NCBI GenBank assembly: GCA_977020255.1
Contig: CDROCS010001101.1
Span: 496,001-560,000, forward strand
Length of the DNA stretch: 64,000 bases
Source of the DNA: Obrimoposthia wandeli
Lineage: Eukaryota
Direction: 5' to 3'
Below the pieces are notes generated by a model. That model saw nothing but the letters and a program-made list of their open reading frames with translations. It was not told where the DNA came from and ran no database searches. Within the stretch, counting starts at the first letter, position 1, and every line of letters begins with the position of its first letter. A program made the translations under genes and the position numbers. This document shows positions 44,103 to 46,158 of this stretch, one piece after another.

Positions 44103-44726
44103 TTATTTAATAAACTGTTTCGCTTGGTTTATTGAATTAATAATCGATACTCTATCTAAGCCCTGCTGATCAGAATCGAGTAACTGCACCCAAAGATCGA
44201 TGGCTTGCTGGTATCGTACATTCATGAACTCATTTGCCGCAAGCATCATTAGAGCCGTCTGATTATTCGGTTCTAGTGCTAACGCTTGATCAAGTAACGC
44301 CTGCACATCAACAGTTAAATGCTGACCGTTTGCGTAATACAATGCTGATGCCTTTGCTGAGTAATGCATTGCCATAGGCTTTGCTGTTAAGCGGATTGCA
44401 TAATCAAATACTAATACTGCATCATCATATTCTCCGTTATACATATAAGCATTACCGAGTTGATACCAGAGTTTAGCATTCTGCTTATCGTCATAAAGTT
44501 TGTCTTGCAGCGTTAAAATGCGCTTATCACTCATTTGCGATAGCGAAAGTTGCTCAAAAGGCGCAGCGGCGATCACAGCTTGCTTTGTTTCTAAAGCTTT
44601 ATAATCGCTTAATAAATAATAACCCGCCGCACTAGACCCGATAAGTACAGAAGCGATAACTGGAGTCCACAAAGATTTACGCATAGCCAATGTCTCTGTT
44701 GATAATGATTGTGAACAGTTTAACAC
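44103..44726 (-). CDS. nrfG: NrfG-like TPR heme lyase subunit (start possibly ATG at 44684)
   Basis: N-terminal TM; TPRs WYQLGNAY, ALYYANGQ, ALMMLAANEF..RYQQAIDLW. Confidence 0.8.
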   Translation of the reverse strand: MLNCSQSLSTETLAMRKSLWTPVIASVLIGSSAAGYYLLSDYKALETKQAVIAAAPFEQLSLSQMSDKRILTLQDKLYDDKQNAKLWYQLGNAYMYNGEYDDAVLVFDYAIRLTAKPMAMHYSAKASALYYANGQHLTVDVQALLDQALALEPNNQTALMMLAANEFMNVRYQQAIDLWVQLLDSDQQGLDRVSIINSINQAKQFIK

Positions 44727-44838
44727 TTCTACCTATTATTACTTAGTTATTAAGATTAATAGTGATGCAGACATTGCGACTTACACAACAAACTGCTTAA
44801 ATACACCTACAAAGTAGTAATAAAAACAAAGAGAGCCT

Positions 44839-45846
44839 ATGAACACGATCAAACAACAGCACTGTAATACCAGAATGATCCGTACTCATGCCCTACTACA
44901 TATGGCTAAATCAATTCACAGTATTCAAGGTGCAACTGCTCAAGGCATTGAATATCCAGCACCTAAAATTAATCTTACAGACATTCAGCAAACGTTAGAT
45001 ACGCTTGAAACCCAATACTACGTGGCAAACACCACCAGCGACGCAGAATCAATAGGTCAACTCAGTACTTCACACGCTACACCGACAACAGGTATCTCTG
45101 CCAACAAGTATGTCTGGCATTATAACGAGGCGATCTCACTGCCTTTTATCCCAGCTAAACTAGCGGTTGTCGGTGCCGGTATTGCAGCAATTGAGATCGC
45201 AACTATTTACCAAGCACTTGGTGCCAATGTGGATATATTAATTACCGGTGATGAGGTTTTTCCTGAACTGGATAAAGATATCAACAAGACCTTTCAGCGT
45301 TATGTCAAACGCCTTTTCAAAATAAAGCCGCAAGCAGAAATTAGCGCTTTTAACTTCATTGATAACCAAGTTCAGTTATCCGTCACCAGTAAAAACAAAG
45401 CATTACCAGATTGCATTTATGATGCGGTATTTATTGCCGACGACACCGACTCACAACGTGATTTATTAACTCAACCTTTCATGGCCACCAGCTTCCCGAC
45501 AGTGACATGGTTAGGCTGGACAGAGAAACAATTAGCAAGCAGTGAGTTAAATTACAAAGTCATCAACCTGCCTTGGCGCGCACTCGGTCGTGCCAATACA
45601 GATGTAAACACCAACGGTCTAACCAAGCTTATTTTTAATACTGATGATCACACCTTAATTGGTGGTGGCATGATAGGTAATAACGCCGATGAGATATTTG
45701 GTGAGGTATGCTTAGCGATACACAACAAGTTTACCGCAGATAATATTGCTCATACAGTGCATGCACACCCGACTTTACATGAGTCAATATTGTTGGCAGC
45801 AGAAGTGTACCTCGGTACAGCAACAGATGTAGTGAACGAAGTATAA
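44839..45846 (+). CDS. Degenerate dihydrolipoamide dehydrogenase (LpdA/E3)-like protein lacking the FAD domain and redox disulfide
   Basis: ALLHMAK, KLAVVGAGIAAIEIATIYQALG, DKDINKTF, TKLIF, HAHPTLHES align with LpdA; N-terminal GxGxxG and CxxxxC absent; GAGAG SD present. Confidence 0.75.
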   Translation: MNTIKQQHCNTRMIRTHALLHMAKSIHSIQGATAQGIEYPAPKINLTDIQQTLDTLETQYYVANTTSDAESIGQLSTSHATPTTGISANKYVWHYNEAISLPFIPAKLAVVGAGIAAIEIATIYQALGANVDILITGDEVFPELDKDINKTFQRYVKRLFKIKPQAEISAFNFIDNQVQLSVTSKNKALPDCIYDAVFIADDTDSQRDLLTQPFMATSFPTVTWLGWTEKQLASSELNYKVINLPWRALGRANTDVNTNGLTKLIFNTDDHTLIGGGMIGNNADEIFGEVCLAIHNKFTADNIAHTVHAHPTLHESILLAAEVYLGTATDVVNEV

Positions 45847-45852
45847 GTACGA

Positions 45853-45894
45853 TTAGCGATGAACTGTTAGCGCTTAACTATTAGCGCTTAACTA
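45853..45894. repeat. 14-bp tandem repeat x3 between two stop codons
   Basis: ttagcgatgaactg / ttagcgcttaacta / ttagcgcttaacta. Confidence 0.8.
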
Positions 45895-46158
45895 TCAATC
45901 AGCATTAACGATAATTAATGCTGACTCGAGCTCAAGGTCACTGGCAGTTTTCACGTCTCCGCAATAACCGCTGTTACATTGCTGCGTACAAGGTTTAGAA
46001 CAATGCACACGCTTGTTGCAGCTCCACAAACACAATTGCCAAACTTGCTGCTTAGATTCAGCATCTAAGCAGTTCAAATCAGCGACACACAGATGACCCG
46101 CTTGAATCAACTCTGCCAGTTTATGTGTTGATATACTTAAATTAACCTTGGTCGCCAT
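45895..46158 (-). CDS. Small Cys-rich hypothetical protein (87 aa, 8 Cys), likely Fur-regulated
   Basis: AGGGA SD; LCVADLNCLD..VWQLCLWSC..HCSKPCTQQC..YC; Fur box upstream. Confidence 0.7.
   Translation of the reverse strand: MATKVNLSISTHKLAELIQAGHLCVADLNCLDAESKQQVWQLCLWSCNKRVHCSKPCTQQCNSGYCGDVKTASDLELESALIIVNAD

Follow-up and report, generated by a model that had tools for sequence, protein, structure and literature searches.

Can a flavoprotein disulfide reductase lose its flavin domain and still be kept by selection? The question is raised by an open reading frame (ORF) at 44839–45846 on the forward strand of the window, the 64,000-nucleotide stretch of contig CDROCS010001101.1 analysed here, whose product derives from LpdA, the dihydrolipoyl dehydrogenase (E3). 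Flavoprotein disulfide reductases are a textbook family, and to our knowledge no described member has lost the flavin domain while staying under selection; our literature searches found no description of a flavin-less, selected flavoprotein disulfide reductase. The gene is under purifying selection and is not a decaying pseudogene, and the family to which it belongs is an uncharacterised family of 'dead enzymes'. That the protein is a selected pseudoenzyme, a catalytically dead derivative of LpdA, we consider very probable: homology to an enzyme, loss of its motifs and purifying selection were all found, and expression was partly shown.

The ORF is unbroken, starts with ATG and comprises 335 codons plus a stop, with a Shine–Dalgarno-like GAGAG at 44831–44835, 4–8 nucleotides 5′ of the start; an initial annotation of this DNA had likewise given an uninterrupted frame of 335 codons with a Shine–Dalgarno element. 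No competing ORF of at least 60 amino acids overlaps 44839–45846 on either strand. The ORF itself, Pfam matches, alignment to LpdA, orthologues and the ratio of non-synonymous to synonymous divergence (dN/dS) mark it as a complete, intact gene for a truncated LpdA paralogue. Among named proteins the closest comes from Moritella marina ATCC 15381 (85% identity), and the DNA of the window is Moritella. Many bacterial LpdA genes occur in the host assembly (1.35 Gb, 6912 contigs), which is therefore a multi-organism assembly; on contig C4844 it carries a second orthologue (L002 1183–2289, 86% identity over residues 76–334), which belongs to a different Moritella, near M. dasanensis.

Architecture of the truncated paralogue

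Pfam placed Pyr_redox_dim at residues 218–318 (4.8e-25) and Pyr_redox at residues 107–175, and Pyr_redox_2 matched only over columns 129–234 of its 291, the middle third of the profile. The best NCBIfam model was TIGR01350 (dihydrolipoyl dehydrogenase), at 152.4 bits below its cutoff of 408.8. Among solved structures the best match was E. coli LpdA (4jdr), in three collinear pieces that pair residues 7–50 with LpdA 44–87 (weakly by sequence), 91–200 with 161–270 and 212–333 with 347–468; a multiple alignment including E. coli LpdA gave blocks at 3–67 (LpdA 40–104), 78–200 (148–270) and 214–335 (349–470). Glutathione, mercuric and mycothione reductases and SthA belong to the same superfamily and have the same Pfam domains, but they are full length and bind flavin adenine dinucleotide (FAD), and they score far below LpdA against the truncated protein.

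Three segments of LpdA are missing. Residues 1–39, the FAD-binding β–α–β unit with its GxGxxG, have no counterpart; residues ~105–147, the β-meander of the FAD domain, are gone, with a linker in their place; and residues 271–348, a stretch of some 78 in the central domain that contains the FAD-binding GD motif, have collapsed to ~13. The redox disulfide has been lost as well. The positions of VCLNVGCI read QHCNTRMI in the window protein (HCNTRM for CLNVGC) and KVETTIV, SENSI and similar in orthologues; the cysteine pair of CxxxxC occurs in no family member, and the remaining cysteine of the window protein is not conserved. All four changes had been named in the initial annotation (an absent N-terminal stretch of ~40 residues with GxGxxG, a lost CLNVGC, a linker replacing the VVNG..DNAIIAAGS segment and a collapsed GD segment), and the alignments, together with the partial Pyr_redox_2 match, bore them out. 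From the sequence we infer that the protein is catalytically inactive and unable to carry out E3 chemistry.

What remains can be followed along the forward strand. Residues 11–65 (44869–45033), the only remnant of the FAD domain, form two long helices, predicted by AlphaFold2 at residues 11–35 and 46–65, which on the alignment to LpdA 40–104 match those coming after the redox disulfide in the enzyme, whose cysteines are gone here. Residues 66–90 (45034–45108) are the linker that replaces the β-meander, predicted to be disordered, with a predicted local distance difference test score (pLDDT) below 50 for residues 68–87. Its length in the family ranges from almost nothing (in P0025, a metagenomic member) to a 27-residue insertion in the second copy of this assembly; that insertion is rich in N, S and T and partly repetitive, and large changes in length are tolerated. 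Residues 91–200 (45109–45438) have the fold of the nicotinamide adenine dinucleotide (NAD) domain with a degenerate dinucleotide site, as judged by the Pyr_redox match, the motif comparison and dN/dS, and residues 201–213 (45439–45477) are a short acidic junction that stands, in the alignments to LpdA, where the ~78 central-domain residues were. Residues 214–335 (45478–45843) constitute a complete interface (dimerisation) domain, as shown by the Pyr_redox_dim match, dN/dS and 49–50% identity to the host's own LpdA (476 amino acids). It contains the loop TVHAHPTL[HY]ES at residues 306–316 (45754–45786), in which His310 and Glu315 are the counterparts of the catalytic His–Glu pair in LpdA.

Five of the six defining features of LpdA that we tested failed, and only the interface domain with its His–Glu pair (HAHPTLHE) was present; the protein is therefore not to be annotated as a dihydrolipoyl dehydrogenase or as FAD-dependent. 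Databases label members of the family "dihydrolipoamide dehydrogenase", "FAD-dependent oxidoreductase" or "NAD-binding protein", and such labels mislead metabolic reconstruction of Moritella.

An AlphaFold2 monomer model built on a 54-sequence alignment (mean pLDDT 82.8, predicted template modelling score (pTM) 0.82) confined predicted disorder to residues 1–7 and to the linker at 68–87, and both N-terminal helices reached a pLDDT of 85–90. Foldseek matched the model to E. coli LpdA with a template modelling (TM) score of 0.83–0.85, and VIA-align superposed 321 of its 335 residues on E. coli LpdA 4jq9 (Z 35.2, root-mean-square deviation 2.4 Å), the superposition spanning model residues 3–335. 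In the model, the two FAD-domain helices, the NAD fold and the interface domain keep the LpdA arrangement around the space of the former flavin fold. The likeness to E3 (4jdr/4jq9, TIGR01350) thus lies in a superposable NAD fold and interface domain and in identical HAHPTLHES and C-terminal G..TD..N motifs, whereas the truncated protein is without the FAD Rossmann fold, the meander, the central domain and CxxxxC, and its NAD site is GxGxxA or worse.

Distribution and selection

Intact orthologues of 332–368 residues are present in M. dasanensis, Moritella sp. PE36 and two metagenome-assembled genomes. Ten of the 13 Moritellaceae species genomes carry an intact copy, none with internal stops, and each of the ten has exactly one canonical LpdA (476–477 amino acids). 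The gene was not found in the ~388 other genomes among 401 sampled from the order. The host range first proposed, Moritella plus Psychromonas, proved too wide: within the 401 genomes only Moritellaceae have the gene, and beyond them it occurs in uncultured metagenomic relatives. A word-indexed protein search recovered these relatives as deeper clades, clade B (P0020–23, 56–59% identity) and clade C (P0025–30, 43–50% identity). Members of neither clade were found among the 401 genomes.

The Moritella clade, clade B and clade C share the same three deletions with the same boundaries, and the frames are intact, at 310–368 residues, in the ten species-genome copies, the second copy of this assembly and ~28 metagenomic members. 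An exhaustive hidden Markov model search of 1.84 billion cluster representatives returned end-to-end matches to P0020 and P0030 only, with ordinary LpdAs ranking next, which marks the family as real but narrow. Short matches of ~300–390 residues were considered as further members and rejected. Judging by the offsets of the matched stretches, those examined (for example, P0167) are ordinary LpdAs cut at the N terminus, with the central domain still present, whereas P0122 and P0257 are missing internal segments; the three-deletion architecture of the family was seen in none of them. A feature search of the ESM Atlas returned generic full-length families only.

Pairwise Nei–Gojobori (NG86) estimates gave a whole-gene dN/dS of 0.08–0.14 at a dS of 0.9–2.5, which is near saturation. 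By part, dN/dS was 0.015–0.11 in the NAD-like domain, 0.014–0.08 in the interface domain and 0.2–0.4 in the N-terminal helices, the linker being barely alignable. Between M. dasanensis and PE36, dN was 0.119 for the truncated paralogue and 0.018 for LpdA, the truncated protein evolving ~7–10 times faster; it changes at several times the rate of LpdA yet is constrained, and has therefore been freed from catalysis while still under constraint. In two species the gene has been lost. G004 retains codons 288–334 only (L039 2893–3033, a 47-codon remnant with 85% identity), directly after a CcmH-like TPR gene, and G012 has no trace of the gene at the syntenic site. The gene is therefore dispensable, that is, accessory.

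Three large internal deletions, the loss of all catalytic motifs and the disappearance of the gene from two species are also what would be expected of a decaying pseudogene, or of a neutral relic whose frame is still open here by chance. Against this, all copies are intact with identical deletion boundaries, dN/dS is ~0.1 at dS above 1, the promoter region is conserved and RNA contigs lie over the gene, and true decay looks different, as in G004. Intact orthologues, shared boundaries and the low dN/dS rule out ordinary decay, and a relic kept open by chance is, in our view, barely credible. Stops, variable deletions and dN/dS near 1, which the initial annotation had named as marks of an ordinary pseudogene, were looked for in the orthologues and none was seen. 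Its claim of domain-specific loss under selection held up, on deletion boundaries common to three clades, intact orthologues, dN/dS of ~0.1 at saturated dS, and RNA contigs.

Conserved surfaces and candidate partners

If the protein is dead as an enzyme, what is it kept for? We compared motifs and conservation in 28 family members with those in 26–33 LpdAs. Columns invariant in LpdA are kept at 33 of 64 positions in the interface domain (52%), 14 of 41 in the NAD domain (34%) and 4 of 23 in the N-terminal helices (17%).

The NAD-binding strand had initially been annotated as retained, which is right for the fold but not for the motif. Where LpdA has GGGIIG, the Moritella members have GAGIAA (GxGxxA), at residues 112–117 (45172–45189) of the window gene; clade B has GTGAMA, and clade C has GYGKAA, GADNTA, GCDKTA or GTSKQG. 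At the end of β2, the Glu of LpdA (VVE) has given way in all family members to I, L, F, Q or V (Ile135 here), never to an acidic residue. The domain has probably been kept as a fold and not as a canonical NAD(H) binder, with NAD binding probably lost.

An NAD(H)-sensing regulatory subunit, reporting redox state to 2-oxoacid dehydrogenase complexes, would explain why the NAD fold is retained, with high model confidence and a dN/dS of 0.015–0.11, and would suit the Moritella members, which still have GxGxxA. However, clade C (GADNTA, GCDKTA and GTSKQG) and P0031 (GDDPTA), a full-length relative described below, no longer have the middle glycine; the Glu replaced in every member is the one that binds the adenosine ribose; 24 of the 41 LpdA-invariant columns of the domain are relaxed; and the FAD ring against which nicotinamide would stack is absent. 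Degeneracy of the site across the family therefore argues against such a sensor. NAD(H) sensing, one of the roles first suggested for this gene, did not survive the finding that neither GxGxxG nor the ribose-binding acidic residue is conserved, and we judge it improbable.

The interface domain was retained whole with HAHPTLHE, as initially annotated. Its loop TVHAHPTL[HY]ES is invariant in all 28 family members, H310 and E315 included, and G326, T329 and D330 of the C-terminal tail are invariant across the family. In E3, the His–Glu loop completes the active site of the opposite subunit, in trans, and the C-terminal tail likewise serves only that site. Here both are invariant although the protein itself lacks an active site, and the simplest explanation would be that it pairs with a subunit possessing one; LpdA, the ancestor and the only E3 in these genomes, is the obvious candidate. 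A dead subunit paired with E3, as the initial annotation had proposed, thus gains support as an idea, the interface domain and its trans-acting loop being the best conserved parts of the protein.

The truncated protein would then act through its dimer interface, as a dimerisation module, with a flavin-bearing subunit as its partner, most likely the cell's single canonical LpdA. The heterodimer would have one complete active site and one dead one, and could tune E3 activity, NADH inhibition or docking to the pyruvate dehydrogenase (PDH), 2-oxoglutarate dehydrogenase (OGDH) and glycine cleavage complexes. Taken as a whole, the explanation that a selected, dead LpdA derivative acts as a dimerisation module, likely with LpdA, is in our judgement evenly balanced between right and wrong. 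The heterodimer mechanism, read from patterns of residue conservation, we put forward tentatively. Its most specific version, an E3-derived regulatory pseudo-subunit that donates His–Glu to LpdA and yields a half-active E3 with altered NADH sensitivity or E2 docking, is conceivable though doubtful.

Several points weigh against this explanation. Conservation of the His–Glu loop could be structural alone, and seven family-wide switches in the interface domain relative to LpdA (A>L232, A>T254, A>G277, L>F287, D>T299, G>L318 and I>A328) could equally favour exclusive homodimers. The gene context shows no link to aceEF, sucAB or gcv. Whatever the gene may do in central metabolism can be dispensed with, since it is absent in G012 and reduced to 47 codons in G004. 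The RNA evidence consists of assembled contigs of a ~97%-identical strain that span convergent genes, and DNA carry-over is possible.

The main rival is a non-catalytic homodimer with a new role independent of pairing with LpdA, for example as a decoy or adaptor for the E2 peripheral-subunit-binding domain or a lipoyl domain, or as a scaffold for an unrelated partner. In its favour, no part of the interface domain is missing and the LpdA arrangement persists in the predicted fold. Three segments, RANTDVNTNG (residues 251–260), GNNADEIF and FQRYVKRLFKIK (residues 152–163), are more conserved in the family than in LpdA, which suggests a newly constrained surface, and the switches in the interface domain might keep the protein from dimerising with LpdA. 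Without FAD domains, however, a homodimer would offer its invariant His–Glu loop and C-terminal tail no active site to face. What we take to be the acidic residue contacting the E2-binding domain (in 1EBD and in human E3 with E3-binding protein (E3BP)) aligns with residue 295, here H, R, S, T or A. A homodimer with a role of its own seems to us possible, if on the unlikely side.

Strongly conserved polar loop residues (N253, T254, D255, N257, T258, N259, H308, H310, E315 and S316) might also be read as belonging to a protein that is still an enzyme, performing a different chemistry with its NAD-like and interface domains; a cryptic hydrolytic activity has reportedly been seen in destabilised human E3. 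Yet the protein has no recognisable cofactor site, no family model beyond the flavoprotein disulfide reductases matches it and the gene has no metabolic operon context, and such an enzyme would be a very improbable outcome.

Pairing with LpdA has a likeness in principle in E3BP (protein X) of mammals and yeast, an E2 paralogue without transacetylase activity in the 2-oxoacid dehydrogenase complex (PMC6270654). Both would be dead paralogues of a complex component kept for a protein–protein interaction surface, but E3BP is E2-derived and eukaryotic, keeps all its domains and tethers E3, whereas the truncated protein is E3-derived and has lost whole domains. If the truncated protein does pair with LpdA, the central 2-oxoacid dehydrogenase complexes would have a regulator of a new kind, and PDH, OGDH and glycine cleavage in cold- and deep-sea Moritella would be under a layer of control not known before. 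The protein would also show clearly, in bacteria, how a pseudoenzyme can evolve by losing domains in steps. The wider importance of the family is limited by its small size, its narrow taxonomic range and its dispensability.

Origin, expression and gene neighbourhood

In maximum-likelihood trees (LG+G4) on columns shared by the truncated family and LpdAs, the family is monophyletic (ultrafast bootstrap (UFBoot) 74–87), on a long stem (length 1.57), and sister to gammaproteobacterial LpdAs. A recent duplication of the Moritella LpdA was rejected, as the family is monophyletic and placed outside the Moritella LpdA group. P0121, considered as the nearest intact relative, was rejected, being an ordinary LpdA from a genome with a ribosomal-protein neighbourhood whose placement is probably due to long-branch attraction.

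The sister of the truncated family, with a UFBoot of 100, is P0031 (L031 5922–7463), a 513-residue full-length metagenomic protein that lacks CxxxxC and in which GD reads GS and the GxGxxG of the NAD site reads GDDPTA. It carries family signatures in the N-terminal helices, the NAD domain and the interface domain, but all four of its domains are full length and its neighbours are sugar-nucleotide genes. P0031 may be an evolutionary intermediate, and its features suggest that death of the catalytic and cofactor sites came first and deletion of the flavin fold later. This order is provisional because P0031 is a singleton on one contig, no close relatives having been found. The family may preserve a path from catalytic death, in a P0031-like form, to later domain deletion.

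The intergenic region 5′ of the gene (44727–44838, forward strand), a putative promoter, operator and ribosome-binding site, was examined in an alignment of 12 upstream regions. Blocks conserved across Moritella are ATTGCGAC, ACAACAAAC, an inverted-repeat block with a TATAAA-like element, and GAGAG; they are kept among species with saturated synonymous sites and are likely to act as a promoter or operator. A scan for the sigma-70 consensus upstream gave one weak candidate (44712–44739), no more than expected by chance. Marine metatranscriptome contigs from two runs of one study start at 44820, 19 nucleotides before the ATG, and cover the gene, with depth just upstream in the intergenic region at about one-tenth of that over the gene. 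As evidence of expression these contigs are supportive, not conclusive.

The only neighbours common to all clades lie downstream: a convergent small Cys-rich ORF (77–89 residues), followed by yjjX (NTPase_I-T). In the window the Cys-rich ORF (45895–46158, reverse strand) encodes 87 residues, lies upstream of yjjX and matches no Pfam family; its identity across clades is 69%, against only 44–50% for the LpdA-like protein in those clades. It is present in 12 of the 13 Moritellaceae genomes, including two species without the LpdA-like gene. The Cys-rich ORF and yjjX were considered as functional partners and rejected for want of co-occurrence: the ORF is kept where the LpdA-like gene is missing, which indicates inherited synteny and not a functional pair.

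Upstream, the neighbours in the window are nrfA and a CcmH-like TPR gene. In most Moritella the upstream neighbour is a divergent gene for a 748-residue protein with an acetyl-CoA hydrolase/transferase C-terminal domain (for example, L007 2231–4477, reverse strand). The window lineage has no such gene at this site, with 112 bp of intergenic sequence left, and the acetyl-CoA theme is not kept in the other clades. The order in clades B and C (L012, L015 and L032) is lipase chaperone, lipase (divergent), LpdA-like gene, Cys-rich ORF, yjjX and a sigma-54 activator with MimR_N. No upstream neighbour is conserved across the family, and upstream context was set aside as a clue to function. Between the convergent genes (45847–45935), where a scan for consensus terminators made no call, a tandem direct repeat of two copies of TTAGCGCTTAACTAT is followed by a 10-bp AT-rich inverted repeat (TCAGCATTAA ... 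TTAATGCTGA), and these repeats may form a bidirectional terminator.

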